Shown: piece by piece, positions 567-62,104 of the stretch
Numbering within the stretch: position 1 is the stretch's first letter
Layout: every line of letters starts with the position of its first letter
The notes under the pieces: generated by a model
Seen by the model: only the letters and a program-made list of their open reading frames with translations
Database searches by the model: none
What the model was told of the DNA's origin: nothing
Translations under genes and position numbers: made by a program
Source of the DNA: Macrostomum lignano
Lineage: Eukaryota
Length of the DNA stretch: 64,000 nt
Direction of reading: 5' to 3'
Assembly (NCBI GenBank): GCA_002269645.1
Contig: NIVC01000177.1
Span: 398,810-462,809, forward strand

Positions 567-849
567 TCCGTAACGTGAGTGTGCTTTTGAACTGTTCAAT
601 CCGATGCACTTGAAATACTAAACTACTACTATATACTAAATAATTGTACTACATTAATATAGCAATATCCTCATGGGAGTAAACTCAGTAGTTACCATAA
701 CTGACTGTCTATTCAAGATTTTCATTATCCCTGTTGTGTCCTGTTCCTGTAGGTACTAGCAAACCCTAAGTATGCGCTGTTCTGTTTGTTGTCGAACTGT
801 TTCTAAACATAACAGCAGAAATCAATGTGTTTTTGTTAATTAGTAGTAA

Positions 850-855
850 AATAAA
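850..855 (+). promoter_or_regulatory. Candidate polyadenylation signal AATAAA for the + copy
   Basis: AATAAA at 850-855 in the unique AT-rich spacer downstream of the + stop codon. Confidence 0.35.
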
Positions 856-920
856 GTGGAAGAATTCATCAAACATTAAAGGACATGCTTTGCACAAAAG
901 CAGTCACGTATAATTACGAG

Positions 921-926
921 TTTATT
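921..926 (-). promoter_or_regulatory. Candidate polyadenylation signal AATAAA for the - copy
   Basis: TTTATT at 921-926, in the unique spacer beyond the 5-kb array on the minus strand. Confidence 0.3.
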
Positions 927-1034
927 TGTTTTACTTATTTCCTTATACGCTCGTGTAACTTTCAGCTGTGTAGGGCAGTAGTGGTACAGTAGTGGCCTTA
1001 AACATTTAGGTGCTATGTGTCATCAGCAACTTCG

Positions 1035-9000: not shown

Positions 9001-10120
9001 CACCATCAACTCAAAGACACTGAAGCAACTCAAGCAGAGAAGCCACACCATCAACTCAAAGACACGGAAGCAACTCAAGCAGAGAAGCCACACCATCAAC
9101 TCAAAGACACGGAAGCAACTCAAGCAGAGAAGCCACACCATCAACTCAAAGACACGGAAGCAACTCAAGCAGCGAAGCCACACCATCAACTCAAAGACAC
9201 GGAAGCAACTCAAGCAGAGAAGCCACACCATCAACTCAAAGACACTGAAGCAACTCAAGCAGAGAAGCCACACCATCAACTCAAAGACACGGAAGCAACT
9301 CAAGCAGAGAAGCCACACCATCAACTCAAAGACACGGAAGCAACTCAAGCAGAGAAGCCACCCAATAACCCCATCGACTCCGACTGTCTCGAAAGGACTC
9401 AAAACAAACTTTGTCACAAAGACCCAAGCACAGTACAGCTGACTCACTGCGCAAGTCGAACTGGGACAGCAGCAGGTCTTTGTTCAGCTGAATCGACTCA
9501 TCGCCTTTACTCCACTCGTACACCACATCTGCCTCTGTGTAGCCGTGACTGCTTACCACCAACGGACACACCTGGGTGTCCATGGGGAACTTGAGCAGAT
9601 TCATGGGACAATTGGCCTTGATGGTGAGTCTCATTGAGTAGAGAATGTGCCCGGTGCTGTTAATCCTGAAGAGTACATTCGGAGACGTGATGTTGTGCAA
9701 GTACGAGCCCATGCCGTTCACAAAGTACGTGTCCGGCTTCCAGATGTCTCTGAGCATTTTCTCGTTCAGCTGCAGGTGCGAAAAGTTGTGATGAGTTGGA
9801 AAGGTGAGCCTGGCGTCCATCCACTCCTGCCTGAAGTAGCAGTCGAATGAGAATATCATGGACTTCTCAGAGATGGGACCGACGCTCCTGTTGTTCATGT
9901 TGATGCGCACAGTAACCGGCTGCGCGTCAAAGTCGGGCCTGAGGTTCTTGTCGTAGTTGTCCAGCAGTCTGTTGAGCGTTTCGGTGATGTTCTTGGTCAT
10001 CTCGGTGTGGTTGACTCCGGCTGTGTACAGCATGGCTGAGCAAGGGCTGCCGATCGGGAGGGCGAGAATGATGGCGAGGCACACGAGAGGATGCTGTAGA
10101 CTGCCTGAGTTAAACAGCAT
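6046..10120 (-). CDS. GABA-gated Cys-loop ligand-gated ion channel subunit, invertebrate GRD/CG8916-like (alpha-like), 459 aa
   Basis: Exons 10120-9448, 7803-7697 and 6645-6046 (GTGAGT donors, CAG acceptors, phases 1 and 0, 1380 nt). Signal peptide; YDKNLRP; YFRQEW (loop D Arg); WKPDTYF; Cys-loop CPMNLLKFPMDTQVC; RHMGYFLLQLYLPC; M1-M2 WINREATSDRIALSITTVLT; DLPRVSYGTALD; M4. Confidence 0.93.
6735..6795 (+). mobile_element. Fragment resembling a hAT/Charlie-type transposon end, in intron 2
   Basis: CAGAGGTTGGCAAACTTCGACCCTCAGGCCACATGCGGCCC resembles the CAGGGGTCGGCAAAC..GGCCCGCGGGCCA..GCGGCCC terminus of Charlie-type MITEs. No matching second end was found. Confidence 0.45.
7889..9361. repeat. 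45-bp intronic minisatellite, about 33 units
   Basis: Unit CAACTCAAGCAGAGAAGCCACACCATCAACTCAAAGACACGGAAG. It fills intron 1 of the GABA receptor gene. Confidence 0.97.
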
Positions 10121-33648: not shown

Positions 33649-34857
33649 ATGTCATATCTATTTTTCGCATTCGGTTTCATCTACTGCATTGTCATAGCAA
33701 CTGCTGTGGCCGCAAACTCCGGCTGGGAGCGCCATCGAAGCGACCTCGCCGAGTACCGGGTGCTGGCGGTGAAGCTGGCCATCAGCGACATTCACTGTAC
33801 GATGCTTGCTGAGAACGCAGATGCCGTCCGCTTCGACGCGGCCTCGGGCTCCTGCTCGCTGCTGGCCTGCGATCGGGGAGCGATGGACGCCTGCAGGAAG
33901 TGCCGGCACTCCAGCGACTCCAGCCTGCCTCAGCTGTGGGTGAGTGAGCTGGGCTTTGCTTAGTGGATTCTGCACTTTGCAGCACCGCATCAATATGCGT
34001 GCACGAAATGCAGCACCGCATCAATATGCGTGCACGAAATGCAGCACCGCATCAATATGCGTGCACGAAATGCAGCACCGCATCAATATGCGTGCACGAA
34101 ATGCAGCACCGCATCAATATGCGTGCACGAAATGCAGCACCGCATCAATATGCGTGCACGAAATGCAGCACCGCATCAATATGCGTGCATGAAATGCAGC
34201 ACCGCATCAATATGCGTGCACGAAATGCAGCACCGCATCAATATGCGTGCACGAAATGCAGCACCGCATCGCTAATTGCAGCTGAGGGAGCCGGTGAAGT
34301 GCTGGACGACCTTCCAGCACCGAGTCGACGGCTCCGTCAGCTTCAACCGCAGCTGGGCGGAGTACGCGAGCGGATTCGGTCAGGGCGAGAGTCTCAACTA
34401 CTGGATGGGACTGGAGCAGCTCCACCAGCTCACCGCCACTGGAGTGTGGAGAGTCCGCTGGGAGTTCAGCGACTGGAACGGCACCTGGTACTGGGCTGAG
34501 AATGCTCCGTTCTCTGTTGGCCCAGCGAGCGACAAGTACAGGTGCTCGATGGGACCTCTGGACGTGAGCAGGTCGAGTGTCGGGCAGCGTACTGAGCAGC
34601 ACTGGTCTCCGAACAACTGGCAGTTCAGCACGCTTGAATCGGACAATGACAACTGGAGCGGTGGCAGCTGCGCCCGAGATAGATCAGGTGGCTGGTGGTT
34701 TGGCTGGTGCAACTTCATCAATCCTAACGGTGTTTACCTGCTCCCACCTGCTGCACTGAATAACACAGGCATCTTCTATTACCTGGTCAATTCAGTGGGC
34801 AGTTCGCTTAAACTGGAGTACTCAATGAAGACTTTTGAGTGCATGCTCTGGCAGTGA
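33649..34857 (+). CDS. Secreted fibrinogen-related (FReD/ficolin/angiopoietin-like C-domain) protein with an N-terminal Cys module, 288 aa
   Basis: Exons 33649-33939 (signal peptide MSYLFFAFGFIYCIVIATAVAA, donor GTGAGT) and 34282-34857. Motifs WTTFQHRVDGSVSFNRSWAEYASGFG, YWMGLEQLHQLT, FSTLESDND, CARDRSGGWWFGWC, NPNG. AATAAA at 34891. Confidence 0.92.
33979..34270. repeat. 31-bp tandem repeat, about 9 units, filling the FReD intron
   Basis: Unit GCAGCACCGCATCAATATGCGTGCACGAAAT. Confidence 0.96.
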
Positions 34858-40396: not shown

Positions 40397-43300
40397 ATGC
40401 TGCAGCCTCATCATCATCAGCAGCAGCAGCAAGAAGGAGAGCTGGCGGCTGATGAAGATGGTAGAGAGTCTGGCATGCTGCCGCCACCGCCACCTCTGCC
40501 GCCTCGCGCAGCGAGCGAGGCCGCTCTGAGCAGCCTAGCCGGAGTTCGCCAATACGACCGAGCCGAACTCGACTCCGCCGTTGTCCGCCAGCTCAGCGGC
40601 GAACTCGAGCGTCGAAGAGCAGCAGAATTGGCCGGACTTCGAGCTCAATTGGCTCGCATCGAATCCGACGCCGATAGCGCTCGTCGGGATCTGGCCAGCT
40701 GCGAGGCTCAACTTGATGCGGCTCTGCGAGATGCCGAGTCTGGAAGCTGCGATCCGGCCAAGACGCGTCGAATTCGTTCGATGGAAGCGGCGGCCGAGGC
40801 TCGCGTCCGCCAGTTGCAAACGTTGGAGGCGAGGCGTCGAGCTACTAAGGAACGAATCGAAGCTGCATCTTTAGAAGCGGAAGCTGTTGCCGAAGCTGAG
40901 GCTGCTGGCACGACGAATCGGGTTGCAGCAACTGGGGATGCAGATTGCGACATGGGATTCGCCGGAGTTGGCAGGGCCGCTGCCGCGCCTTCAATTGAGA
41001 GGCCTGTGGCTGTGAAGCGGCCAGCAGTTTGTGTTGAGGTTTGTTCACATTGTTGAGATTGGCTTGCTTATTCATTACCAGCGTCAATAGTGGAGTAGTA
41101 TTTGTTTTTCCTCTGGTTTTGATTAGAGCCGATACAGAAGTAGATGAGTCTTTGTTTTTCCTCTGGTTTTGATTAGAGCCGATACAGAAGTAGAGGAGTC
41201 TGTTTTTCTCCTGGTTTTGATTAGAGCCGATACAGAAGTAGAGGAGTCTTTGTTTTTCCTCTGGTTTTGATTAAAGCCGATACAGAAGCAGAGAAGTCTT
41301 TATTTTTGTCTGCTTCTGACTCTGCGTTCATACTGGACCATAGTTGTAGACTTTGTTTCTTGTTACAATTCGTGTTTATTAAGAGAAGCAACTAGTCTTT
41401 GTTTCGATGTAATGCAAGTCTTTGTACGAGCTATCCTAACAAGAGCTAACAGATATCTTTCTCAGGTGTTTATGGCCTATCTAAATTAATCAGGTGGACC
41501 CTTCAAGCACGCGAAGCGCCCCTGCAACAAAGCGCTCTCGACAACAGCAGAAGCAACACCAGCAACGTCGAAGACAGTCAGTTCGCCTTGTGGAGGAGTC
41601 GCCTCCAGAGTCGCCTTCTTCAGCGGCATCCTCGGAACTTCATCAGGAGGCTCAGCATCAGCAGCAGCAACAGCGAGCCCGTCCTCTGCTGGATGACGCC
41701 AGCCTACTGGCCTACGAGAGACGCATCGCCCGTCTGAATCGCAGCGAACTCATCGACAGGCAGGTTCGTCTGGAGGACGGTGGCAGCGACATCGGCGATG
41801 ACTTTAACGATGAATCCGACGATTCGCCGATGCAATTGGAAGGCCTGCCAGATGGTTTGGCGTTCGCTTTGCCCAGAAAAGTCTGGCAGTCTTTGTTTCC
41901 TTATCAGCGAGTGGCCGTGCGCTGGCTGAGGGAGCTGCACTCTCAGGCAGGTTGGAGGGTTTTTGAGTACTTTCCATGATTGATATTTGTTAGTACTTAG
42001 AAATAGACAAACCATTTTAGTATACCGGACGTGGGATCTACTAATCTTGATAAGGAATCTATAGATCTTAATGAAAAATCTATAGATCTTGATGAGAAAT
42101 CTACAGATCTTGATAAGAAATCTATAGATCTTTAAGAGAAATCTAAAGATCTCGACGAGGAATCTATAGATCTTGATATGGAATCTATAGATCTTAATGC
42201 AAAAATCTATAGATCTTGATGAGAAATCTTTAGATCTTGATAAGAAATCTATAGATCTTAAAGAGAAATATATAGATCTTGATGGGGAATCTATGGATCT
42301 TGATAAGAAATCGACAGATCTTGATAAGAAATCTATAGATCTTTAAGAGAAATCTAAAGATCTCGACGAGGAATCTATAGATCTTGATATGGAATCTATA
42401 GATCTTGATGAGAAATGTATGGATCTTGATAAAGAATTTATAGATCTTAATGAGAAATCTATAGATCTTGATAATGAATTTATAGATTTTGATGAGAAAT
42501 CTTTAAATCTTGATGAGAAACCTTTACATCTTGATGAGGAATCTATAGATATTGATTATAAGGAATCTATAGATTTTGATGAGGAATATTTAGATCTTGA
42601 TGAGATACCTATCTTGATGATGAATCTATAGATCTCGATAAAAAGTCTATAAGATCTGGATAAGAAACCCATAGATTGTTTTGAAAAATTTATATCATAT
42701 AAGAAAACACAATCAAGCACAATGCAACATCACTGCAGGGAGTTGGCGGCATTATGGGCGATCAGATGGGCCTGGGCAAAACTGTGCAAATGATTGCCCT
42801 ATTGGCTGGCCTGTCCTACAGTCACAACCGGTTAGGCGGCCCCCGTCTCGGCCCTGTGCTTATCGCCTGTCCGGGCACCGTGCTGCAGCAGTGGCTTGGC
42901 GAGCTGCGACAGTGGTACCCGAGATTTCGGGTGGCTATTCTGCACTCTACTGGTAGCGGCTACTCTAAACCTGCTAAATTAGTGCACAGCATTGCCAATC
43001 ATCCCGGCATATTGCTGACTACCTACAATACCTTAACTATGCATAGGGATGTTCTGTTAAAGTACAGATGGGATTACGTCATCCTGGACGAAGGCCATCG
43101 GATTAAGAATCCAACTAGCGATGTTACTATCGCTTGCAAGCAGTTCCCGACGCCGCATAGGATAATTATATCCGGTACTCCGATGCAAAATAATCTTAAG
43201 GTGAGCGGTGAACATACTACTTTTTTAACCTTAAACTACTGATATATGCTACTGATTGCTTGAGTGTGTTTTAATACTACTGATTAATTAATTGGGTGTG

Positions 43301-46136
43301 TTATATACTTACTGATTAATTGAGTGTGCTGTATACTACTGATTGCTTGTGTGTGTTATATACTACTGATTGCTTGTGTGTTATATACTACTGATTATTG
43401 AGTGTGTTATATACTACTGTTGCTTGTGTGTTTTATATACTGCTGATTGCTTGTGTGTGTTATATACTACTGATTATTGAGTGTGTTGTATACTACTGAT
43501 TAATTGCGGCTGTTATATACTACTTATTAAAAATAAGTGTGTTTTATACTGCTGAATTAATGGCCTTCGTGATATCCTAACACTTTGCAATTTGTTTACC
43601 AACTTACAGTACCAACTTAAGCTAAAAAATACAATTTATCAATAAGCATTTGAATAGCTGTTAAAAATATCAAATTTAAACCAATCACACCGAACCCCCA
43701 ATACCAGGAACTTTGGTCTCTATTCGACTTTGTCTATCCTGGCAAACTGGGCGACCTGCAAGACTTTATGCAGCACCTGGCCACCCCTATTCTACAGGGT
43801 GGCTACGCCAGCGCTAGCAAATTCCAGGTGGAATTGGCTTACAGGTTGGTTCCGCCTTTATGTGCTAATAGTATATTTATAGATATTTTATTATTAACTG
43901 GGTGATGCGATCTCTAATTAGGGATTAATACCTGTGTGATAGAATCTCTAATTAATGATTAATACCTGTGTGATAGAATCTCTAATTAATGATTAATACC
44001 TGTGTGATAGGATCTCTAATTATGGATTAATACCTGGATGATGGGATCTCTAATTAACCATTAATACCCGGATGATGGGATCTCTAATTAACCATTAATA
44101 CCTGGATGATGGGATCTCTAATTAACCATTAATACCCGGATGATGGGATCTCTAATTAATGATTAATACCTGGATGATCGGATCTATAATTAGGGATTAA
44201 TGATCGGATCTATAATTAGGGATTAGTACCTGGATGATGGGATCTCTAATTAGCTTGGATTAATACCTGGATGATGGGATCTCTAATTAGGGATTAATGG
44301 CTGGATGATGGGATCTCTAATTATGGATTAATACCTGGATGATGGGATCTCTAGTTATGGATTAATACCTGGATGATGGGATCTCTAATTAGGGATTAAT
44401 ACCTGGATGATGGGATCTCTAATTAAGGATTAATGGCTGAATGATGGGATCTCTAATTATGGATTAATACCTGGATGATGGGACCTCTAATTAGGGGTGA
44501 AGAGGTCTACACCTGACAGATAAATGCTCTAGACCGCTGGACAGTAGACCCGTAGTAGTTTTCCTAGATTTACTACTAACAGTAATAGAACTAAATAGCA
44601 GTGCATGGAATAGTTCAAATGGAGTGATAGTTTGTTCATTCACTGGTAATTATTTCTTGATACAAAACCAGATGCGCCTGCAGCCTACGGGACACCATCA
44701 ATCCTTATCTATTGCGCCGAATGAAAGAGGACGTGCGCCTGCAATTGCCGGGCAAAAGCGAACAGGTGCTATTCTGTCGTCTGTCTGACTATCAACGCGA
44801 TGTGTACAAGGAGTACCTGGCGTCTAGGGAGTGCCGGCAGATTCTGGAGGGTCGCTATATGGTAAGGTTTATTCGGTAGATTAGCAGATCGGTTGATTAC
44901 TGAACAGCTTGATAGGTAAGATTTGTAGACCGCTAGAATGGTAGATAAATTGGTATGCCGATATGTAGATTTGTGAGCAGGTAGATTTGGGTAGACAGGT
45001 AGATTTAGGTGGGTAGGTAGATTCGGGTTGCAGGTGGGTTTGAGTAGACAGATAGATTAGGGTAGACATATATATTAGGGTAGACAGGTAGATTTGGGTA
45101 GACAGGTAGATTAGGGTAGACAGGTAGATTTGGGTAGACAGGTAGATTAGGGTAGACAGGTAGATTTGGGTAGACAGGTAGATTAGGGTAGACAGTAGAT
45201 TTGGGTAAACAGGTAGATCAAGGTTGACAGAGTAGATTAGGGTAGACAGTAGATTTGGGTAGACAGGTAGATTTGGGTAGACAGGTAGATTAAGGTTGAC
45301 AGGTAGATTAGATTAGACAGATATATTAGTAGGTAGGCAGGTAGAATTTGATAGACAGGTAGATAGATTGTTAGACAGGTAGGTAGATGTTTAGGCAGCC
45401 AAGTAGGTAGACAGGTGGGTAGACAATGGTAGAACATTTAAACGGTTTGGCAGGGAAATGGATAATCAGTCCTATAGCTTACAACCCCGCCACCACCCCG
45501 ATCCCACAGGTATTCCCAGGCCTGTCCACCCTCCGCAAGATCTGCAACCATCCAGACCTGTCAACCGGGCCGCCGCAGAAGTTCGGCCTGCCGTCGCGCG
45601 AGTCTCTGACATTCGGCTACTACAAGCGCTCCGGCAAGATGCTGGTTGTTGACGCTCTGCTGAAGGCCTGGCGCTCGGATGGTCACAAAGTGCTGCTGTT
45701 CAGCCAGAGCCGCCGGATGCTGGGGGTGCTGGAGGCGTTCGTGAAGAAGCGCGGCTATCCCTACATGCGGATGGACGGCGGCACAGCCGTACGCAGCCGG
45801 CAGACCCTGGTGCACAGGTTCAATACGGATCCTGGCACGTTTGTGTTCCTGCTGACCTCGCGAGTTGGCGGGATTGGGGTCAACTTGACCGGGGCTAATC
45901 GGGTCATCATATTCGATCCCGACTGGAATCCGTGCACGGATTTGCAGGTTTGATTGATGGGGAGAGACTTTAATCAATCCGTTTATTAATTGGTTTATCA
46001 ATTAGTAAATATATCGTAAATCTATCTATTCTAATTAATCAATCTTCCAATCCATCAATCAATCTTCCAATCCATCAATCAATCTTCCAATCCATCAATC
46101 AAACATCCAATCCATCAATCATCCAATCTATCTATA

Positions 46137-46218
<82 letters not shown>

Positions 46219-46256
46219 ATCTATCTATCATCTATCTATCTATCATCTATCTATCC

Positions 46257-46295
<39 letters not shown>

Positions 46296-46329
46296 CATCT
46301 ATCTATCTATCATCTATCATCTATCTATC

Positions 46330-46399
<70 letters not shown>

Positions 46400-49300
46400 C
46401 TAATCAATCACTCAAACAGGCCCGAGAGCGTGCCTGGCGCATCGGGCAGCAGAGAGACGTGGTGATCTACCGCCTGCTGTCCTCCGGCACAATCGAAGAG
46501 AAAGTTTACCACCGCCAGATCTTCAAGCAGTTCCTGGCCAACAGAATCCTTCGCGATCCTCGACAGCGCCGCTTCTTCAAGGCCAACAATTTGGACGAGC
46601 TGTTCGCTCTGAAAGACGACGTCGAAGGCACGGAGACCAGGGCGCTGTTCACCGGCACGGGGGCCAGCACCAACAGGTTCGACGCCTTGCGACAGCGTCA
46701 AGAAGCTGCCGGAGTCGATCTGGGCGCAGCGTCCGACAGCGAAGCTGAGATGGCCTCCACCGATGTGGACGCGATGAGCGAGTCGTCCGCTAGTGATGGT
46801 TTGTGTTGGGTTGTTTGTTGGACTTTGTTGCTTGACTTCGTGTCTTGTCAGTTTTTTTAGTCTGCACCCCAAAGTTGTTTAGTTTAGACCCTAAAGTTGT
46901 TTAGTTTGACCCTAAAGTTTTTTAGTTTGACCCTAAAGTTTTTTAGTTAGACCCTAAAGTTTTTTAGTTTGACCCTAAAGTTTTTTAGTTAGACCCTAAA
47001 GTTTTTTAGTTTGACCCTAAAGTTGTTCAGTTTGGACCCTAAAGTTTTTTAGTTTGGACCCTAAAGTTTTTTAGTTTAGACCCTAAAGTTTTTTAGTTAG
47101 ACCCTAAAGTTTTTTAGTTTGACCCTAAAGTTGTTTAGTCTGCACCCCAAAGTTGTTTAGTTTAGACCCTAAAGTTGTTTAGTTTGACCCTAAAGTTTTT
47201 TAGTTTAGACCCTAAAGTTTTTTAGTTAGACCCTAAAGTTTTTTAGTTTGACCCTAAAGTTTTTTAGTTAGACCCTAAAGTTTTTTAGTTTGACCCTAAA
47301 GTTGTTCAGTTTGGACCCTAAAGTTTTTTAGTTTGGACCCTAAAGTTTTTTAGTTTAGACCCTAAAGTTTTTTAGTTAGACCCTAAAGTTTTTTAGTTTG
47401 ACCCTAAAGTTGTTTAGTTTGGACCCTAAAGTTTTTTAGTTTAGACCCTAAAGTTGTTTAGTTTGACCCTAAAGTTTTTTAGTTTAGACCCTAAAGTTTT
47501 TTAGTTAGACCCTAAAGTTTTTTAGTTTGACCCTAAAGTTGTTTAGTTTGGACCCTAAAGTTTTTTAGTTTAGACCCTAAAGTTTTTTAGTTTGGACCCT
47601 AATGTTTTTTAGTTTGACCCTAAAGTTTTTTAGTTGGATCCTTAAGTTTAGCTGGATCCTAAAGTCTAGTTGGATCCTGAAGTTTAGTTGGATCCTGAAG
47701 TTTAGCTGGATCCTGAAGTTTAGTTGGATCCTGAAGTTTAGCTGGATCCTGAAGTCTAGTTGGATCCTGAAAATTAGTTGGATCCTGAAGTCTAGCTGGA
47801 TCCTGAAGTTTAGTTGGATCCTGAAGTTTAGCTGGCTCCTGAAGTTTAGCTGGATCCTGAAGTTTAGCTGGATCCTGAAGTCTATTTGGATCCTGAAGTT
47901 TAGCTGGATCCTGAAGTTAATTCTAGCTAAATTGCATTCTGCACCTTACAGTTTTCTGGAAAATGATATTTATTACTTAATCTTCATCGCACCACCCCCA
48001 GCAGCGCCGGCCGCAGCGGCCCAGTTGACCGACAGCAGACGCGCAGAATTGCGCGAATTGGCGCGCAAGTTAAGCGCCAAAGTGGCGCGCGAATTTAGCG
48101 CCCCGTCAGGCGCCGATGCCGAGCCGGCCGAGGCCAGAGGGCCGGCTCAAGAGAAATCCCGTCGTAAAGAGAAGAAGCAGAAGAAAAAGAAGAAGAAAAG
48201 CAAAGACAAGAGCGGCGGTGACAGGAAACGCGCTCGCGGCGCCAAGCGCCAGGAAGTCGACGGCCATCGAATCGAGTTTGTGGTGAAGCAGGCCGCGTTC
48301 GACTATGGTGATGGACAGCGGGGTTCGGGTGAGACCACTGTTCAAGATTTTAAATAATCCAAAGCACTTTAATTTATCAGATTTTATACTTGTTCAGTCG
48401 AATAACTTTTGGGATTTCATATTTCGATCCAGGTAAATTTTGATCCTATTGGGAAAGATTTTGGGATTTCATAATTTTATCCAGGTAAATCTTAATCTCA
48501 TTGGGAAGAATAGTTGGGATTTCATAATTTTATCTAGGTAAATCTTGATCTCATTGAGAAGAATAGTTGGGATTTCATATTTTGATCCAGGTAGATTTTT
48601 ATCCTATTGGGAAGAATAGTTGGAATTTCATATTTTGATCCAGGTAAATTTTTATCCTATTGGGAAGAATAGTTGGAATTTCATAATTTGATCCAGGTAA
48701 ATCTTGATCTCATTGGGAAGAATTGTTGGGATTTCATAATTTGATCCAGGTAAATCTTGATCTCATTGGGAAGAATTGTTGGGATTTCATAATTTGATCC
48801 AGGTAAATCTTGATCTCATTGGGAAGAATTGTTGGGATTTCATAATTTGATCCAGGTAAATCTTGATCCCATTGGGAAGAATCTTTGGGATTTCATAATT
48901 TGATACAGGTAAATCTTGATCTCATTGGGAAGAATCTTTGGGATTTCATAATTTGATCCAGGTAAATCTTGATCTCATTGGGAAGAATCGTTGGGATTTC
49001 ATAATCATCCAGGTAAATCTTGATCCCATTGGGAAGAATAGTTGGGATTTCATTATGCTCCAGGTATGAATCAAAGCCATAATTCCCTTCTCAATTAACC
49101 AGACAAAACCGGCGCCGGGCCGTCGACCTCCAGAGATGCAGCGGACTCTGCGGACCCCCTGGTGTCGGCCCTGGTGCCGCGAGCCAGTCAGCACCGGCTT
49201 GAGGCAGCGGAACGCTCAAATCCTCAAATTGACGCTGAAGTTCGTCGAGTACTTCGCAAAGCCCGTCTGGATGCCTCACCGGCCAAGCGGAAGCCGCCGG

Positions 49301-52300
49301 CGGCTCTCGATGGCAAAGCAAAGAAATTGAAATCGAAAATAGCAAAGATACCAAAGTTGCAGACAGAATCAAAGGCTGCATCTACTACTGCCGGTCCGTC
49401 TAGCGGCAGTAGTATAATAGCCAGCGGTGCAAATAATAAACTGGAGAGGGCGTTGATTCGTTGCGGCGTGCAAGACGCCGTATTGCAGGAGGTGATCGAA
49501 GCTCCCGGACCAGCGGATGTGGATCTGGTCGAATGGCAGGCCAGTGAGACTGCGACTGCGGCGGTTGCAGCGCTGCGAGATCGACTGGCTGCCTCTGCTG
49601 CTGCTGCCGCTGCCGCTGGGCCGGTCAAGCAGTTTGGTCGGGTGCGCCGCTGCTGGCTCTGGTGTCGGCTGGATGATTCAACAGCTCAGGGCCAAGGTAA
49701 AAATGTTGCTTGATGTTATAGACACTTCCGGTGTGTTACCTCAAGTGACAACCAAATAGTACTTCCGGTGTTGCTTCAAGTGATATTCAAATAGTATTTC
49801 CGGTGTTCCTTTAAGTGATAACCAATTTTACTTCCGGTGTTGCTTTAAGTGATAACCAAATAGTACTTCCAGTGTTGCTTTAAGTGATAACCAAATAGTA
49901 CTTCCGGTGTTGCTTTAAGTGATAACTAAATAGTACTTCCAGTGTTGCTTTAAGTGATAACCAAATAGTACTTCCGGTGTTGCTTCAAGTGACAACCAAA
50001 TAGTACTTCCGGTGTTGCTTCAAGTGACAACCAAATAGTACTTCCGGTGTTGCTTCAAGTGACAACCAAATAGTACTTCCGGTGTTGCTTCAAGTGACAA
50101 CCAAATAGTACTTCCGGTGTTGCTTTAAGTGATAACTAAATAGTACTTCCAGTGTTGCTTTAAGTAATAACCAAATAGTACTTCCGGTGTTGCTTTAAGT
50201 GATAACTAAATAGTACTTCCGGTGTTGCTTCAAGTGACAACCAAATAGTACTTCCGGTGTTGCTTCAAGTGACAACCAAATAGTACTTCCGGTGTTGCTT
50301 TAAGTGATAACTAAATAGTACTTCCAGTGTTGCTTTAAGTAATAACCAAATAGTACTTCCAGTGTTGCTTTAAGTGACAACCAAATAGTACTTCCGGTGT
50401 TGCTTCAAGTGACAACCAAATAGTACTTCCGGTGTTGCTTCAAGTGACAACCAAATAGTACTTCCGGTGTTGCTTTAAGTGATAACTAAATAGTACTTCC
50501 AGTGTTGCTTTAAGTAATAACCAAATAGTACTTCCGGTGTTGCTTTAAGTGATAACCAAATAGTACTTCCAGTATTGCTTTAAGTGATAACCAAATAGTA
50601 CTTCCGGTGTTGCTTCAAGTGACAACCAAATAGTACTTCCGGTGTTGCTTTAAGTGATAACCAAATAGTACTTCCGGTGTTGCTTTAAGTGATAACTAAA
50701 TAGTACTTCCGGTGTTGCTTTAAGTGATAACCAAATAGTACTTCCGGTGTTGCTTCAAGTGATAACCAAATAGTACTTCCGGTGTTGCTTCAAGTGACAA
50801 CCAAATAGTACTTCCGGTGTTGCTTTAAGTGATAACTAAATAGTACTTCCGGTGTTGCTTTAAGTGATAACCAATGGTACTTCCGGTGTTGCTTCAAGTG
50901 ACAACCAAATAGTACTTCCGGTGTTGCTTTAAGTGATAACTAAATAGTACTTCCGGTGTTGCTTTAAGTGACAACCAATGGTACTTCCGGTGTTGCTATC
51001 AAGTGACAACCAAATACTGTATGTTTGGTGTTGTCTGAAGCAACATTTAACGTAATTTCCGGTGTTGATTTTGGGGATATTTTATGACACTCCCGGTGTT
51101 GCTTTTAGGGATATTTTATGACACTCCCGGTGTTGCTTTTAGGGATATTTTATGACACTCCCGGTGTTGCTTTTAGGGATATTTTATGACACTTCCGGTG
51201 TTGCTTTTAGGGATATTTTATGACACTCCCGGTGTTGCTTTTGGGGATATTTTATGACACTCCCGGTGTTGCTTTTAGGGATATTTTATGACACTCCCGG
51301 TGTTGCTTTTGGGGATATTTTATGACACTCCCGGTGTCACCTTTAGGGATATTTTATGACACTCCCGGTGTTGCTTTTGGGGATATTTTATGACACTCCC
51401 GGTGTCACCTTTAGGGATATTTTATGACACTCCCGGTGTTGCTTTTGGGGATATTTTATGACACTCCCGGTGTTGCTTTTAGGGATATTTTATGACACTC
51501 CCGGTGTTGCTTTTAGGGATATTTTATGACACTTCCGGTGTTGCTTTTAGGGATATTTTATGACACTCCCGGTGTTGCTTTTGGGGATATTTTATGACAC
51601 TCCCGGTGTTGCTTTTAGGGATATTTTATGACACTCCCGGTGTTGCTTTTGGGGATATTTTATGACACTCCCGGTGTCACCTTTAGGGATATTTTATGAC
51701 ACTCCCGGTGTTGCTTTTGGGGATATTTTATGACACTCCCGGTGTCACCTTTAGGGATATTTTATGACACTCCCGGTGTTGCTTTTGGGGATATTTTATG
51801 ACACTCCCGGTGTTGCTTTTAGGGATATTTTATGACACTTCTGATGTGGCTTCCAGCCGCAAAATTGTCTTACACGCACAATAAAATACTTGAAGAGTTG
51901 ATTCGGGAGGTGATCAGTCTCCAGAAAACTCCCACTTCCAGACACTTGAGCCTGGGAACAGAATAAGGTGTTCACTTACTGTGGCGGGCTCCTCTTCTGT
52001 GTTGGGCAGGTTCTCCGAGCTCGTTTCTTTAAATCTTCTTCTCCGGAGGAATCTTCTTGAAGTCTAGAATCGGCCGAAAGTGAGAGCGTAACAATCAAGT
52101 CTGGCGACGTCGCAGTATTTCTCGAATGCAAACCAATATAGGCCTTAGGTTCAATAATCAATATCAACAATGCGCCCTAATAACAAGATCAACTTCTGTG
52201 ATAATAACGAGGTCCTCCAAGAAAGGCGTCTTCTTCTAGAAATAACGGAATCGGAGTGGTGTGCTCCTATCGGTTAATCTAGGATAACCAAAATCAATCA

Positions 52301-53669: not shown

Positions 53670-54110
53670 TGCTAAATCAGGTGTCTAAGGGATCTAGTTG
53701 GCTCACCAAATCAGGTGTCTAAGGGATCTAGTTGGCTCACCAAATCAGGTGTCTAAGTGATCTAATTGGCTCACCAAATCAGGTGTCTATGGGATCTAAT
53801 TGGCTCACCAAATCAGGTGTCTAAGTGATCTAATTGGCTCACCAAATCAGGTGTCTAAGTGATCTAATTGGCTCACCAAATCAGGTGTCTAAGTGATCTA
53901 ATTGGCTCACCAAATCAGGTGTCTATGGGATCTAATTGGCTCACCAAATCAGGTGTCTAAGGGATCTAATTGGCTCACCAAATCAGGTGTCTAAGGGATC
54001 TAGTTGGCTCACCAAATCAGGTGTCTAAGTGATCTAATTGGCTCACCAAATCAGGTGTCTATGGGATCTAATTGGCTGACACATATCAAATGTCTATGGG
54101 ATCTAATTAG
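53670..54110. repeat. 34-bp tandem repeat, about 12 units
   Basis: Unit TTGGCTCACCAAATCAGGTGTCTA(A/T)G(G/T)GATCTA(A/G). Confidence 0.94.
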
Positions 54111-54439
54111 CTTGCTCAAAATTACGAGTACTTACTTATAATAAAGGCTGTGGTGTCCTTGAAGGCTATGTATCTGTGACTACATAACTAAGACATAGCT
54201 CGTTCCAATCCTTAGGTAGACCACCCTCTGGTACCTATTGTTTCTATCGTTAGCACGGTTAATTAGATGTTAGTGATGGAAGTACCTTGATGCTATGATC
54301 AAGCTTTTTACGGAACAGGAAGCTAGTGTCAACTCTCAAAGTTTTTTCCTGGACTGTTTGAATCAATAAAATATCAATTCTAGTGACAATTTATTCAGTT
54401 TTAATGTGGTGGTGTTGTTAACTTAATGTTTTTCGCACT

Positions 54440-54860: not shown

Positions 54861-55275
54861 ATATACACTGCATGTACGAGCGTATGTTGCTTATAACTTT
54901 TCTTGCTTCTCTTATCATGCCAGCTTGGAATTCAGTTTATATCAGTTTGTTCAGTTTGAAATAAACGTGGATCCAGAATCCTGGCTTCTGTAATGAAGTT
55001 TTGATATATAAGGATCCAGGCCCTTCCTAGGGTTAGAATTTTGCATATAAGTGAGTTTCCTAATATGGAATAAGGAAATGCAGCTTGCCAATAGGGTTTC
55101 TCTCTTAGTTAGGTTTGCCGTTGGGCAGCGTTTACTGTCTACGAGCTAGTTAAATTGTATGGGTGCTGTGATAGAATACCTATTTTTAAGAGCCTAGGCT
55201 TTTGTATAAATATAATAAAGCTGGACTCGGCTGCGGAGGTCAGAAATAACGCCTTTAAAGTTTATCTGACTGACA

Positions 55276-58200
55276 ATGCCTCGCTATCTTGTGTCTCTAG
55301 CCCTGCCTCTGCTGCTTCTCAGCAGCTGCTGTTTGCACGGTGAATCTTCTTTGCCGAGCTATGTCGATTTTCTTCACGACTACAGCCGCACGTACGACTG
55401 TCGATGTCATACGGTTTCTTCGGAATACGACTTCTTGTGCGAGATCGTTAAAAAAGGATTAACGGCAGCAAATAGCAGCATCAGCTGCTCCAACCTGCCT
55501 ACAAAAGTGATTGCTCACCTAAACATCAGCTGCTCCGGTTGCAGCAACTGCGTCTCAGTGAACATGCACGAGATGACTCGAGCTCATTATGACGATGACC
55601 AGCAGATAAACTTTTATCCGCCGTCGGAGATTTCACTGAACGATTGTCGGGTCAACAGTCTCAATATTAGAATGATGCAGTTGAGAGCTGAGAATGTCAG
55701 CGTCACTGAAGGCATGGAGATAGCACAGTTCGGTGTGCCACAACATCCGGGTGTTGGTGGCTACTACACCGTGAATGTCACCTACCCGACTGATTTCAAC
55801 GCGTCCGATTGTTGGCTGACTTACCTGCACATCAGACGGAGCAGTATGTGGTACTTGCCCGCCTATGTTCTACACAAATGCCAGTACATTCGTAGTGTAA
55901 GCATCGTTGAGTCGCCGATCACGTGGGTATCGATGACTGACCTACTGGCCCTTCGGTCAATCGATAGCTTGACCCTGCGCAACTGCAGCGTGAGAACGTT
56001 TGCCGATGACGCTTTGTCGAAAGCGCTGACGGCTCTAGATGAATATCTGCAACGAGTTGGTCCGCAGCCAGTCACTGAGAATCCTCAAGTAGCAGAGGCT
56101 ATTAAACGACTGCGTAAGATGAGGCAGGACTCCGGCAAACTGAACTTGGTAATCAATCTGTACGACATGATGGACTCATTCAACATCAGCTTTTCGCTGC
56201 TATTCGGCTACCGAACCATCAGCCTGGGCAGTGGCTTTTCTCCCTCCGACATTCCGTTCGACGTAGCTCTCAGTTACTTGAACTTGCAATACAATGAGCT
56301 GACCGAGATCCCTTTTTCTATCAGCATGTTTGGCAATTTAAATGCAATTGACCTTAGTCACAACAAAATACGCAGGCTGTATCACAGCTGGCTGTGCTGG
56401 TACCCTCCTATACGCGAGGAAGACAAGGCAAACTCTACCAGACACTGCTATTGGTTCAGAGGATCCAGGCAGACTCTGAAAGTGCTGAACCTTTCTTACA
56501 ATCGAATCAAACAAATTGGCGAAATTCAACCTTGGCACGGGGTAAGGTGCATTGAAAAAATATTATTCATATTTTCATTCGCAGGATGGCTGTAGGCACG
56601 TCTTCGGCGACATTGTCCCACAACCAACGCTGAGGCCATTCTGTTCATTCCACTGACTCCACAAGCGCTCCAATACTGTACGCAGGCACTCACTCATGCA
56701 CTCGCTCACACAGGGTGTGAAGTGCACAAACCCCCCCCCCCCAACCATTTTTCGTGCACACAAGCCCCAAATGTATGAGGCCGCGCGCGGAATCGAACCA
56801 GGGGTCGTTGCGCGAGAGTCAGACGGGCTTACCGCTAGTTCTCTTGATAGCCTCGTATTGGGGTTTTATAATAAAACCTGTTGACAACCCACAATGTCTT
56901 TAAACGGACATTGTTCTAAATTCTACTAGCTGTTTCTATCTTCTCGGATACCTTTAAATGACGCCGCGACAATTGTTCTAGTAAAAAAAGATACCCAGCA
57001 AGTTTAAAACCCAACTCGTCACATCTAGGTGGCACTGGCCGAGCTGTACCTGCAGAATAATTTTATTGTGAGCATCAATTCGGACGCATTCAGCTATTCG
57101 CTGCTGTCAAAGAGCCTGCTGGCGCTTAACCTCGACGACAACCAACTGCCCTACATTCATTTAAAGTGCTTGAGCCGCCTGGAGACTCTGAGCATTCGAA
57201 ATGGTGGCCTGGCAAATATCGAGCTCAGTTCCATTCCCCAGTCGGAAAGGCTTAGGTGGATCAATCTGACCAACAATTCAATCAGCTCGATTTCCTACAA
57301 CGCTTTCAACAATCGTCCAGCCTTGGAGACAATAGATCTAAGGAACAATAGCTTAGAAAATATGTATGCATACAGCTTCAACATGTCGGAGCGTCCAACC
57401 TTAAGCTCTCGTGTTGTCTTGTTAATAAGCGGGCAAAAGGTTAAAACGGTCTGCAACTGCTATCACGTCTACGCTTACATAACAGAGGAAGAGACCGACT
57501 TGGAAAGGACTAACTACCACTATCCAGCGATCCCTAAGCACGAATTGGAAATTACGTCATGCCTATTCTTCTTGAAGGACGGTGCTAACTCAACTAGAAA
57601 ACTAAGTGGTGCATCGTACCGCGAGTTCTTATGTGCCTTCAGTGGCGACTATGAACAGAAATTACCGAAAAAATACTGCGAACAACCCCCACAATCTCAG
57701 TATGCGTCGTACGCAAATGAACCAATCCCATAACAGGCCTGACTAACAGCACGTTTGAGTGTTGGGAGACTTGCGTACCCGACTGCAGCTGCTACCACAC
57801 GGCCAAGTGGGAGTTGTCCGACCTCAACTGTACCAATATTGATGTAAACATGGTCAGCATACTGCTGCGCATCCCTGTAAAGTACATGTACTTTTCCGGA
57901 ATCAGGGAGTCCGACTATTTCCACAGAATAACAAATTCCACACTGAAATGGGAAACACCAAAACTCCGCGATGCCTTAGTAGTTTTGTTTTTCAACAATA
58001 GCAACATTCGCTACATCGAAGAGAATGCGTTCGTAGATAAAACTTCGATAAAGTTTCTATACTTGGACGACAACAGGCTTGAAAAAGTACCGGCAAAAGC
58101 TTTCTGCTCACCGAATTCAGATCTGATTCGGCTAAGTCTATTGAGAAACAACCTAACTTGGATTGACCCCTATTTGTTAAATTCTAGCTGTCTTCCAAAT

Positions 58201-60117
58201 TTAAACGAACTCAAGATCAGCAGCAATCCGTGGCACTGTCAGTGTAACGAAATGTGGACAAGTCTTCACAAATCTCTAATTAGTGTGGCGCGCACAACGC
58301 AAGTTGTCCCAGATTTCGAAAGTATGCGTTGCCAAGTGGATCCGGCAATTATTGAAGCCTGCGAATTGAACAGATGGAATGATGCCTGGCGACTTGATTG
58401 CCAAAAAATTCTTTTAAGCAATGGATCTCGCGACTATCCAGTGAGCGATGAGGGCGGACTCGTCAGGGTGTGCGAGCTTATAGCGGACTCGGCAGCACAG
58501 CAGTGAAGGCAGATCGTCCTGATCATTCTGTCCTCATTATTCGGTCTCGCGCTGCTCGGTTTCGCGGTGCTCGCTGTCCGCCGTCGACACCGACTGCTGG
58601 CCGTGGTTCGAGTCCTCATCCTCCTCAAGTACCAGAGCAGTCGGCGACTGCAGCAGCAGACATCTCGGGACTCGCTGCCGTACGACGCGATGCTGTGGGC
58701 GTCGGACAGAGACCAGGACTGTCTGGTCGACGTGCTGAACTGCGTGCGCAGCGCCTCGGGCGGAGACGAGCTCGAGCTGTGCGTTCCGGAGAGCTTCCTC
58801 TACTCGGACCTGTGCTCCTGTCCGCTCACCTACTTTGACTGTCCGGCTGAGGGAGCCAAGTTCAGCGGCAAGGTGGTGGTGGCTTTGTCCGAGAGGTTTC
58901 TCGACACCCAGTACCTGGCTCTGTGTCAGGTGATTCGAGATCTCGACAGCTTAGGTCGGAATCCGTTCAAGGACATCGTGTTTCTGCGCCTGAGCTCGCG
59001 CAGAGTGTCGCTTCAGCGCCAGAGACAGCTCGGACCTGAGGACGTGGAGGCGTTCCACACTCTGCAGAGAATCCTCGCAGGGAGCGACATCGAATACAAG
59101 TCCGTTGACTGGGAATACAGACTCATCGAGCGCATTCGGAACCGAGATCCGGCCGCCGTTCTCGTGTTTGACTCGTCTGTTCCGCCAGAGACTTCAGCGG
59201 CGGCCACGCCCGCGGTAGCTGACCGCCTTGATATTACCGTCGGGACCGCATCGGAGCCTGAAGAGCTATTAGACCTTCCAGGCGAGGGGCAGCCATTAAT
59301 TGTGGACGTTGAGCAGACAATAGATTTTATAAGTAAGTACACAAATTATTGCGGCACTGTTCTGAAATCGGCTTCAAAACGATGAGCTCGGAATTTCCAC
59401 CATTACCCGTATAATATATTATCATATAACCAATATAAAGGAAGCCGCACCATCCTGAGCACGATTCGGGACTGGCCGCCGTTCCACTCGGACAAAGTGC
59501 CGGAGGTCTTCATCCTGTCTGCTCCTGAGTCCGCCTCTGACTCCGAGTCCCGAGCCGACCCAGATTCGAGCTCGAACACCGTCGTCGAGCTCATCGTTCG
59601 TCGCCTCCAAGGCGTTCGGCTCGGCACCAACGACGCGGCCCTGACTGCTCGCTGGCCTGACAACTTCGAGGGCGCCTCGCCAGCCGGCCGCATCAACAGC
59701 TTCCTGATGAAGCGAACTCGCCAGTTCGTGCTGCTGCTCAGCAACGGCCTGCTCTGCTGGCTCAGAGACGAGGCCGAGCTGCAGTGCGAGTTCCAAGCCT
59801 TCCTCGCTGCGAACTCGTTCAGACGCCGCCTGCTGGTAGTTCAGGTTGGACAGGTGAGACTCTCGCAATCAGCTGAGTGTGCAGGTCTGAGTTTTGAGTA
59901 GCTTTGCCTCACTGCTGTGTGAGTGAGACATACAGTATCGATCTTTATTCACTCGCAGGTGGACAGCCGGTCGAGAGCTCGCTACCGGGCGCTGGCGAAT
60001 CAGCGACTGGACGGCGGGGAGTCCGGGCCGGCGACGAACTGGTTCGACATGAGCGCCGAGGACCGCAACGTCGAGGCACTGGGGCTGTGGCTGGATGGCG
60101 TGCTGTACAAGAAGTGA
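55276..60117 (+). CDS. Toll-like receptor, multiple-cysteine-cluster type, with two TIR/SEFIR-like cytoplasmic domains; disrupted in this sequence (possible pseudogene)
   Basis: Exons 55276-56541, 57029-59332, 59441-59853 and 59959-60117. Signal peptide; more than 11 LxxLxLxxN LRRs; internal LRRCT plus LRRNT (CWETCVPDCSCYH..W..SDLNC); SNPWHCQC; TM IVLIILSSLFGLALLGFAVLAV; TIR box YDAMLW. One-base frameshift near 57722 and in-frame TGA at 58504-58506. Confidence 0.85.
56600..56840 (-). mobile_element. Diverged tRNA-derived SINE in TLR intron 1
   Basis: The - strand head TAGCGGTAAGCCCGTCTGAC...CCTGGTTCGATTCC has A/B boxes. GCGACATTGTC(C/A)CACAACC is shared with the 60495-60810 copy. Confidence 0.7.
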
Positions 60118-60494
60118 CTCCTGAGCATGAAACTTTGATGAAGCGCACGAAAAAATTGATAGACAGTAAGAATGTTATCCCAGTTCGACATGTAGAATTT
60201 AAATATTGAAAAATTAAAAGTGCAATAAATTGCAACCGAACATCACTTTTTCATCGTAAAGATCCACCTTAAAAATATACAACATGTGAATTCGAGTGGT
60301 TGCTTCACGTCGACTAAGAGCCACTGGCCGGAAAAGAAGAAAGTGCTGGGGACTTCCTGCTGAACACAGGCAAAGAGCCGCAAGGCCGCTATCACCCTGG
60401 AAGGAAACCGTTAGCCATCAGATTACTCCTTGGTCAAGCGTCCATCAGCACTGACCTACTGTACACTGGGACCTTATTGTGTTAGTTATAGGCA

Positions 60495-61099: not shown

Positions 61100-62104
61100 A
61101 AGGACAATGATGCAACTGGGGATCGCACGTCCTTCTTTACTAACTCATTCAAGCAATCCCCAGACTAACCTTCAAGCAATCCCCAGACTAACCTTCAAGC
61201 GATCCACAGACTAGCCTTCAAGCGATCCACAGACTAACCTTCAAGCGATCCCCAGACTAACCTTCAAGCGAGCCCCAGACTAACTTTCAACCAATCCACA
61301 GACTATCAAGCGATCCCCAGACTAACCTTCAAGCAATCCCCAGACTAACCTTCAAGCGAGCCCCAGCCTAACCTTCAACCAATCCACAGACTAGCCTTCA
61401 AGCGATCCCCAGACTAACCTTCAAGCAATCCCCAGACTAACCTTCAAGCAATCCCCAGACTAACCTTCAAGCAATCCCCAGACTAACCTTCAAGCAATCC
61501 CCAGACTAACATTCAAGCGAGCCCCAGACTAACCTTCAAGCGATCCCCAGACTAACCTTCAAGCAATCCCCAGAATAACCTTCAAGCAATCCCCAGACTA
61601 ACCTTCAAGCAATCCCCAGACTAACCTTCAAGCAATCCCAGAATAACCTTCAAGCAATCCCCAGACTAACCTTCAAGCAATCCCAGACTAACCTTCAAGC
61701 GATCCCCAGACTAACCTTCAAGTGATCCCCAGACTAGCCTTCAAGTGATCCCTACACTAACTAACCTTCAAGCGATCCACAGACTAACCTTCAAGCGAAT
61801 CGGAGTTGATTAAACGCTCATAAGAGCAAAGCGTGACTATGTCAGGGGCAGATGAAAGCTGGTACATGTAGCTCGTAGATGCAGCTATATCAAGTATCAC
61901 AAAGTCAAAGGTTAGTGTTGGCGCCAGCGTTCTTGATAGCTATAGCTTTTAAACTTCGTTTTACAACCTAAATCTGACAAATCTGACAATAAATTAATCG
62001 TGGTAATTACGACATATGAAATTTTAAATATTTTAAAGTCTGGGGATTGCTTGAATGAGTTAGTGAAGGAAGGACGTGCGATCCCCAGTTGCATCATTGT
62101 CCCT
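61100..62104. mobile_element. Non-autonomous Kolobok/T2-MITE-like DNA transposon (about 1 kb), TTAA target duplication, TIRs of about 68 bp
   Basis: TTAA|AAGGACAATGATGCAACTGGGGATCGCACGTCCTTC..CAAGCAATCCCCAGACT (61100-61166) is the inverted match of 62037-62104 ending ...CATTGTCCCT|TTAA. Confidence 0.85.
61148..61798. repeat. 23-bp tandem repeat, about 28 units, inside the MITE
   Basis: Unit TTCAAGC(A/G)ATCCCCAGACTAACC. The first unit is the inner end of the left TIR. Confidence 0.96.

Follow-up and report, generated by a model that had tools for sequence, protein, structure and literature searches.

A probable P-type Toll receptor gene with an additional cytoplasmic domain in the flatworm Macrostomum lignano

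Does a flatworm, a member of a phylum held to lack Toll-like receptors (TLRs), carry a gene of the Toll family? The question is raised by a locus of Macrostomum lignano at positions 55276-60117 of a 64,000-nt stretch of contig NIVC01000177.1 (the window, from whose first nucleotide all positions are counted). A reading made from the sequence alone, without database searches (the sequence-only reading), had proposed here a Toll receptor with two cytoplasmic TIR/SEFIR-like domains and had stated that surveys generally report no canonical TLRs in flatworms. The latter is confirmed by the literature: TLRs are stated to be absent from Platyhelminthes (PMC8609888, PMC10279657, PMC7958881), and a screen with a TIR hidden Markov model (HMM) lists M. 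lignano with 0 TLRs (PMC8609888). We found that the locus is a real gene and that, as a whole, it is probably best explained as a member of a small Macrostomum family of P-type (Drosophila-Toll-like) Toll/TLR receptors. It encodes, in order, a signal peptide, an ectodomain of leucine-rich repeats (LRRs), a membrane-proximal LRRCT, one transmembrane (TM) helix, a first cytoplasmic domain (TIR1), a poorly conserved linker of ~60 aa and a second cytoplasmic domain of ~182 aa (D2).

Gene structure, ectodomain and relatives

Six long plus-strand open reading frames (ORFs) were found between 55276 and 60117 in the ORF list and in the three-frame translation of 55100-60400. With the junctions read, all frames were joined exactly into a spliced frame of 1363 codons plus a stop (4092 nt), comprising five exons separated by four canonical GT-AG introns (Table 1). 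The peptide strings quoted in the sequence-only reading were all found where it had placed them on the plus strand. Its multiple 'lesions', in contrast, turned out to be mostly introns: a supposed frameshift near 57700-57750 is the 50-nt intron 2, and the only lesion is an in-frame TGA. Once intron 2 is removed, the spacer between LRRCT and LRRNT falls in the same length class as in two paralogues, P0001 and P0002 (see below). For intron 3, an alternative junction at 59337/59460 was weighed; the GTAAGT donor with the acceptor at 59441 was preferred, a choice that is unproven.

Table 1. Coordinates of the receptor gene, its domains and the neighbouring genes in the window
Feature	Positions	Strand	Residues	Description and basis
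Exon 1	55276-56541	+	1-422	Start ATG, signal peptide, N-terminal cysteine cluster, first LRRs; Pfam LRR_8 E 4e-11; N-terminus and cysteines align with P0001 and P0002; donor G/GTAAGG
Signal peptide	55276-55341	+		Predicted; within exon 1
N-terminal cysteine cluster	55399-55551	+	42-92	
Intron 1	56542-57028	+		487 nt, GT-AG, phase 0; site PWHG/VAL corresponds to phase-0 site PWFE/VNL in P0002
Exon 2	57029-57699	+		LRR block 1 and internal LRRCT-like cluster; Pfam LRR_8 E 8.4e-14
Internal LRRCT-like cluster	57452-57679	+	564-639	CxC...C...C...C; Cys 564, 566, 600, 624 and 639 invariant in the four-sequence alignment
Intron 2	57700-57749	+		50-nt GT-AG mini-intron, phase 2; removal joins frame 2 to frame 1 exactly
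Exon 3	57750-59332	+		LRRNT-like cluster, LRR block 2, juxtamembrane LRRCT, TGA, TM helix, TIR1, linker; Pfam LRR_8 E 4.6e-10
LRRNT-like cluster	57760-57831	+	650-673	CxxxCxxxCxC...C; cysteines invariant across paralogues
Juxtamembrane LRRCT	58225-58473	+	805-887	NPWHCQC...C...C; cysteines invariant across paralogues
P0001-like block	58450-59169	+		Juxtamembrane region, TM helix and TIR1; 80-100% protein identity to P0001 against 20-50% in the flanks, sharp boundaries (sliding windows)
In-frame TGA	58504-58506	+	codon 898	CAG CAG TGA AGG; two codons before the TM helix
TM helix	58513-58578	+	901-923	IVLIILSSLFGLALLGFAVLAV; sole strong hydrophobic peak, Kyte-Doolittle maximum 2.7; followed by RRRHR
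TIR1	58672-59133	+	954-1107	Putative divergent TLR/Toll-type TIR; profile-profile comparison
Intron 3	59333-59440	+		108 nt, GTAAGT...AAAG, phase 1; separates linker from D2
Exon 4	59441-59853	+		Linker end and most of D2 (from 59464, IRDWPP...); EVFILSAP, WPDNFEGAS, RQFVLLLSNGLL, RRLLVVQVG; ~33% identity to the P0002 C-terminal domain, motifs conserved
D2	59464-60114	+	1182-1363	~182 aa over exons 4-5
Intron 4	59854-59958	+		105 nt, GTGAGA...CGCAG, phase 0; two in-frame stops inside; not in P0002
Exon 5	59959-60117	+		Last 52 residues of D2 and stop codon TGA (60115-60117); aligns with the P0002 C-terminus (YR.LA...ES...N.F...G.W)
Polyadenylation signal	60224-60229	+		AATAAA, 107 nt past the stop codon
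Cys-loop ligand-gated ion-channel genes (two)	6046-10120, 21982-22479	-		Pfam Neur_chan_LBD E 3e-47 and 4e-25, Neur_chan_memb E 7e-35
Fibrinogen-related domain exon	34276-34857	+		Fibrinogen_C E 3e-34; ~20 kb upstream of the receptor gene
SNF2-family helicase gene	40397-49713	+		Multi-exon, ERCC6-like by domain order; SNF2-rel_dom E 1e-42, Helicase_C E 1e-19

The N-terminus is hydrophobic and signal-peptide-like (MPRYLVSLALPLLLLSSCCLHG), and LRR_8 was found by Pfam in three exon products. The ectodomain contains 34 cysteines, which are largely invariant among paralogues that share only ~31% identity, and their clusters follow the order of an internal LRRCT, an LRRNT and a juxtamembrane LRRCT. 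Because the Pfam LRRNT and LRRCT models gave no score on these clusters, assignment to the P-type (multiple-cysteine-cluster, mcc) class rests on the cysteine pattern and its conservation. The Drosophila-Toll-type ectodomain proposed in the sequence-only reading therefore stands as to its LRRs and its invariant LRRCT-LRRNT cysteine patterns, but not as to the Pfam cap models. The predicted arrangement of the clusters is that of P-type Tolls. A TM helix between the LRRs and the cytoplasmic part had also been proposed, and a single strong peak of Kyte-Doolittle hydropathy, on which the call rests without a dedicated TM predictor, agrees with it; all 20 NxS/T sequons lie in the ectodomain, before the stop and the helix, and none lies in the tail. 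These predicted features show a type-I membrane LRR receptor.

Like the P-type/mcc Tolls (Drosophila Toll and the spiralian mccTLRs), the window protein has a predicted signal peptide, LRRs split by a putative LRRCT-LRRNT pair, a putative NPWxCxC-type LRRCT and a single TM helix, followed by a cytoplasmic domain whose best single template is the TIR of Drosophila Toll (hhalign P 6.5e-5). It differs from them in that its ~320 N-terminal residues contain few recognisable LRRs, its TIR lies beyond the reach of Pfam and lacks the RDxxPG BB-loop and box-3 FW, and an extra C-terminal domain of ~182 aa follows, all in a phylum reported to be TLR-less.

To find relatives, the ORF covering the TM helix, TIR1 and the linker was scanned with HMMER against 1.84 billion representative proteins. 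Two true relatives were recovered, both from Macrostomum lignano, which agrees with the flatworm host that the sequence-only reading had supposed. P0001 (UniProt A0A1I8HBV3, 1068 aa, E 7e-138) is named 'TIR domain-containing protein'. P0002 (PAA67356.1 / A0A267F0V0, 1357 aa, E 7e-11) is the hypothetical protein BOX15_Mlig015932g1 at NCBI and a 'TIR domain-containing protein' in UniRef; its 90% cluster also contains its duplicate P0010 (PAA88883.1), together with fragments that carry the names 'Protein toll', 'LRRCT domain-containing protein' and 'Leucine-rich repeat protein'. The other seven matches of the scan fell on the linker stretch (query positions ~134-285), each through many repeated segments, and were read as probable low-complexity matches. 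Look-ups for exact counterparts of the exon-1 ORF product and of P0001 had no result.

Over its whole length, Met1 to C-terminus and D2 included, the window protein aligns collinearly with P0002 and P0010 at ~31% identity. Furthermore, the exon structure of P0002 was rebuilt exactly on its contig, and two intron positions are common to both genes: a phase-0 intron between PW(H/F)x and V, and a phase-1 intron that precedes by 7-9 residues the WPP motif at the start of the C-terminal domain. Two further introns are present in the window gene, and P0002 has one of its own inside TIR1. Since the phase-1 intron sits at the equivalent site, the annotation of P0002 joins the TIR1 exon to the D2 exon in the same way; P0001 ends inside the equivalent of intron 3, and its annotation is therefore truncated. 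The claim that the second unit, on separate exons, is part of the gene thus holds, the same domain being conserved in P0002 behind an equivalent intron. Compared with these entries, the window copy shares the whole architecture with P0002 and P0010 and a 97%-identical TM-TIR1 block with P0001, and differs in its ectodomain, which shares 30-65% identity with P0001 and ~31% with P0002, in its two extra introns and in its in-frame TGA. By these comparisons it is a predicted distinct paralogue of P0001 and P0002. Mlig015932 is itself present in two near-identical copies, g1 and g2, on M. lignano contigs NIVC01001489.1 and NIVC01000172.1, with the same neighbouring genes, one XPG-like, one encoding a PH domain and one an MFS sugar transporter; the near-identical loci are consistent with large-scale duplication in the M. 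lignano genome.

The two cytoplasmic domains

To assess the first cytoplasmic domain, its family alignment was compared by hhalign with a reference alignment of nine TIR sequences (TLR1, TLR2, TLR4, TLR10, MyD88, Drosophila Toll, SARM1, RPS4 and L6). The profile of these nine was validated against the PDB, where it recovered 88 TIR chains and found the source proteins at E 3e-62 to 2e-33. TIR1 scored 33.1 against all nine TIRs (P 8.9e-5, probability 60%) and 40.6 against the TLR/MyD88/Toll subset (P 5.4e-6, probability 86%, 132 columns in register). In contrast, the score against the SARM1/plant TIR subset was 14.3 and not significant. The best single templates were Drosophila Toll (33.8, P 6.5e-5), then TLR4 and TLR2. 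All controls remained well below these scores: 100 column shuffles gave a mean of 11.6 (standard deviation 2.1, maximum 20.0), reversed alignments gave 11.8-12.3, and 79 chunks of unrelated real proteins reached at most 17.5. In the alignment, the motifs of TIR1 pair with those of known TIRs as YDAMLWASDRD/YDAFVSYSERD, LELCVPE/FKLCLHK, KVVVALSERFLDT/KTVFVLSENFVKS and SVDWEY/YLEWP, and KVVVALSERFL stands opposite KTVFVLSENFV. A probability of 95% is the usual level of proof in hhalign, and TIR1, at 86%, falls short of it. From these comparisons we concluded that TIR1 is a putative, very divergent TLR/Toll-type TIR domain, whose divergence is the reason why HMM-based surveys missed it. The UniProt name 'TIR domain-containing protein' of its relatives suggests that some other signature does match.

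With the C-terminal domain of P0002, D2 has ~33% identity, and the two share the blocks WPP, (E/D)V..L..P, RRL, PD.FE..GAS, K.TRQFV.LL, W, RR.LV, YR.LA, N.F and G.W. Conservation is similar across the regions of the protein (30% in D2, 31% in TIR1, 27-51% in the ectodomain). In addition, between the duplicates P0002 and P0010 a total of 14 codons differ synonymously and 4 non-synonymously, of which 5 and 2, respectively, lie within D2. As D2 is conserved to the same degree as TIR1 and the ectodomain, and as non-synonymous changes between the duplicates are few, D2 is coding and constrained. These codon and protein comparisons show purifying selection in the M. lignano paralogues, D2 included, and we take D2 to be a genuine and conserved module, predicted to be alpha/beta. 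It was not recognised by Pfam, by PADLOC or by sequence searches of the PDB, and no relatives of D2 were found in metagenome and prokaryote genome contigs.

Is D2 a second TIR? With hhalign, D2 scored 19.8 (P 0.028) against the SARM1/plant TIR subset and 24.4 (P 0.003, probability 10%) against the SARM1 TIR alone, over 64 columns from the BB loop to betaD, with RQFVLLLSNGLL of D2 opposite RNFVLVLSPGAL of SARM1. None of 300 shuffles scored as high as the SARM1 match, the null maxima being 21.7-22.1. The D2 of the window alone reached 18.7 over 96 columns, above all 79 real-protein controls. Against the TIR1 profile, D2 scored 14.2 (P 0.23), which is within noise, and no tandem-duplicate relation was detected. 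The SEFIR-like features attributed to D2 in the sequence-only reading were not borne out: Pfam SEFIR gave no match at E<=10, and the score against an alignment of the IL-17RA and IL-17RB SEFIR sequences, both confirmed in the PDB, was 11.7, equal to that of reversed decoys, in a comparison of low power in which TIR against SEFIR itself scores only 15. The glutamate at the position used by TIR NADases could be placed in the window copy, where a low-confidence alignment sets its W-L-R-D-E/AEL region opposite W-C-K-Y-E-L of TIRs with the Glu at the alphaC position, but P0002 has W-F-Q-E-D...RRL there and does not conserve it. The alphaC Glu is also carried by non-enzymatic TLR TIRs.

Several results weigh against reading the gene as a Toll receptor with such a tail. 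The proposal that TIR1 is a TIR is upheld by the in-register profile-profile match, but every sequence-to-profile search was silent. Pfam TIR, TIR_2 and SEFIR found nothing at E<=10 for TIR1 of the window, P0001 or P0002, and the same check with Pfam/HMMER, which the sequence-only reading had suggested for both cytoplasmic domains, was negative for D2 as well. PADLOC recognised neither domain. Searches of the PDB with TIR1 by phmmer and hmmsearch found no TIR and only chance-level matches, and a TIR HMM run with filters off over the 687 ORFs of the window did not rank TIR1 and gave D2 only 2 bits. In TIR1, neither the canonical BB-loop 'RDxxPG' nor the box-3 'FW' is present. The profiles compared by hhalign are shallow, consisting of 2-3 family sequences and the nine PDB-validated TIRs. 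For D2, the score against all nine TIRs was 16.9 (P 0.063), a value reached by 6 of 300 shuffles, and the SARM1 score is the highest among nine templates tried. AlphaFold, to which the sequence-only reading had looked for the fold, gave beta-alpha alternation for D2 with a three-row alignment, but at low confidence (predicted local distance difference test, pLDDT, 46.8; predicted template modelling score 0.45); the tail of P0002 alone reached a pLDDT of 34, and Foldseek on both models returned no match below E 0.1 and no TIR. Finally, relatives were found in one species only, and the window copy, given its premature stop, may do nothing. Two PDB profile matches of TIR1 to a bacterial kinase effector (E 0.18-0.32) were at chance level and were judged to be noise.

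The alternative that survives best concerns D2 alone: it may be a genuine second TIR, which would make the gene a true twin-TIR Toll and the flatworm counterpart of the twin-TIR/SPP-2TIR P-type Tolls, an established class of bivalves (oyster, mussels, Hyriopsis cumingii; PMC10279657, PMC5845394, PMC8181103), with NAD+ cleavage possible. The order and spacing of its elements are TIR-like (EVFILS as betaA, PDNFEG as a BB-loop-like stretch, RQFVLLLS as betaC, a Trp and an acidic alphaC, RRLLVV as betaD and G.W near the end), and at low stringency they follow the TIR profile collinearly for 140 columns. The SARM1 score, the margin over the real-protein controls, a beta-alpha alternation as in a flavodoxin-like fold, and the architectural precedent among spiralians point the same way. 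Against these stand the silence of Pfam, PADLOC and the PDB sequence searches, an hhalign probability of at most 10%, the whole-profile P of 0.063, the low-confidence model without a TIR among its Foldseek matches, and the NADase-position Glu that P0002 does not conserve. Moreover, D2 scored only at noise level against TIR1, whereas the twin TIRs of mussels cluster together as duplicates (PMC10279657). We therefore hold a genuine twin-TIR Toll to be a serious candidate that falls short of an even chance. The looser statement, that D2 is a second, very divergent TIR-like domain, which resembles the SARM1 type more than the TLR type and did not arise by recent copying of TIR1, comes marginally closer to even; otherwise, D2 would be a lineage-specific domain. 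D2 resembles the SARM1 TIR in the stretch from the BB loop to betaD and differs from SARM1 in its position in a receptor tail, without SAM/ARM domains and without a catalytic Glu that is conserved in the family.

How new, then, is this receptor? As in the bivalve twin-TIR Tolls, a P-type ectodomain is followed by two tandem globular cytoplasmic modules, and both groups belong to Spiralia; in bivalves, however, both modules are recognisable duplicate TIRs, whereas D2 has no detectable similarity to TIR1 and is only weakly TIR-like. The novelty of the two-domain tail thus holds in that D2 is conserved and without detectable similarity to TIR1, but not in the architecture, which is already described in bivalves. 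Likewise, an overlooked TLR lineage is supported by the surveys that list none for M. lignano, but UniProt has already given the relatives the automatic names 'TIR domain-containing protein' and 'Protein toll'. A link between Macrostomum and Toll receptors was not found in the literature searched, and the database entries carry automatic names only. The gene is not of a wholly new kind; it is a Toll-family variant, strongly diverged and with an additional tail domain, in a phylum reported to have lost the family.

If such a receptor signals as Tolls do, ligand-driven dimerisation of the ectodomain would bring the TIR domains together, and these would then nucleate TIR-TIR assemblies with adaptors such as MyD88, and D2 would supply a second module, either for interaction or as an effector. 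MyD88 has been reported in planarians (PMC7958881). D2 itself could represent a second TIR that has degenerated, comparable to that of the bivalve twin-TIR Tolls, or a novel signalling module. A further-reaching possibility, which we regard as rather doubtful, is that macrostomorphans have retained a functional P-type Toll family whose tail combines a TLR-type TIR with a SARM1-like TIR, the latter serving as the receptor's own adaptor or effector TIR, and which is possibly kin to the mollusc twin-TIR Tolls. If true, Platyhelminthes did not lose their TLRs at the base of the phylum. A family of Toll architecture with a remote, in-register TIR, in a flatworm lineage that branched early, would already shift the inferred loss to later flatworm lineages; M. 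lignano, in which RNA interference and transgenesis are workable, would gain a candidate pattern-recognition or developmental Toll; and surveys based on HMM thresholds would be seen to undercount fast-evolving immune receptors.

The in-frame TGA and the remaining explanations

At the site of the TGA, P0001 has an Arg (QQRRQIV in P0001, QQ-stop-RQIV in the window). Splicing out the TGA as part of a 72-nt in-frame intron (58441-58512) was considered and rejected, because P0001 keeps the residues across that stretch. As written, the copy would yield at most a secreted LRR fragment of 897 aa, or an mRNA subject to decay. Protein identity to P0001 varies along the gene: it is 37-65% by block over the ectodomain (aa 1-875, of which aa 231-345 have no P0001 counterpart), 82% over aa 876-935, 97% over aa 936-1119 and 20-40% from aa 1120 onwards. 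From protein identity, we infer that the P0001-like block in Table 1 is a putative gene-conversion or recombination tract between paralogues of one genome. The tract contains the TGA, and the nonsense change would therefore be recent. Third-position GC is ~0.5-0.6 over the ectodomain exons and 0.75-0.89 between the TM helix and the stop codon; the rise starts at the TM boundary and reaches beyond the conversion-like tract into D2.

Most likely, the window holds either a copy that lost its function recently or a null allele, with redundant copies elsewhere in the genome. Alternatively, the TGA may stem from an error in assembly or sequencing, or mark a segregating allele, and the locus would then encode a full-length functional receptor. 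The TGA is indeed the sole defect in 1363 codons, the splice sites and polyadenylation signal are intact, and the surrounding block is 97-100% identical to the intact paralogue, so that any inactivation would be very recent. However, there is no ambiguity at this base in the window, changes of CGA to TGA are common, and the M. lignano genome is extensively duplicated, so that loss of one copy would be tolerated. Weighing these, we consider an error or segregating allele unlikely. As the window copy is probably null, the biology of this family is to be studied on the intact paralogues.

It is improbable that the tail is not a TIR at all, in which case the gene would encode an LRR-TM receptor of the 'LRR-only TLR-like' sort with a lineage-specific tail, its likeness to TIRs being convergent or spurious. 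The failure of every curated HMM and sequence-to-profile search, the missing box-2 and box-3 motifs, and the published HMM-based surveys without a TLR in M. lignano are what such a tail would predict. They are opposed by a match that stays in register over 132 columns and reaches P 5e-6, well clear of all controls, by best templates that are specifically Toll, TLR4 and TLR2 and not SARM1 or plant TIRs, by independent automatic annotation of the relatives as TIR-domain proteins, and by the Toll-type LRRCT-LRRNT ectodomain. That exons 4-5 are a separate downstream gene or untranslated sequence is very improbable: the annotation of P0001, the closest relative, lacks D2 and stops within the intron 3 equivalent, but P0002 and P0010 are annotated with D2 fused behind an equivalent phase-1 intron, the GTAAGT donor of exon 3 and the acceptor of exon 4 join in frame, D2 lacks its own upstream Met and signal, and purifying selection acts on it in the paralogues.

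Other features of the window

Within intron 1 of the receptor gene, a segment at 56770-56845 (GCCGCGCGCGGAATCGAACCAGGGGTCG...CTTACCGCTAG) resembles the reverse complement of the 3' half of a tRNA and may be a fragment of a tRNA-derived short interspersed element; ARAGORN and Rfam made no call there or anywhere else in the window. The neighbouring genes are listed in Table 1, among which the fibrinogen-related gene is a candidate for another immune-recognition gene.

Tandem-repeat arrays were observed at 1-6000, 7849-9447, 50000-51839, 53674-54112 and 61139-61801, those between 50 and 62 kb having periods of 35, 34, 34 and 23 nt. Sequence shared between repeats of the window and M. lignano contigs was limited to short stretches with 75-93% identity. 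The longer arrays at 0-6 kb and 7.8-9.4 kb yield repetitive pseudo-ORFs, and the latter lies between exons of an ion-channel gene. In addition, a tract of ~2.9 kb at 17500-20450 is essentially G-free on the plus strand (GC skew -1.00); it is a degenerate short-period repeat that produces pseudo-ORFs of 800-950 codons in several frames on both strands.

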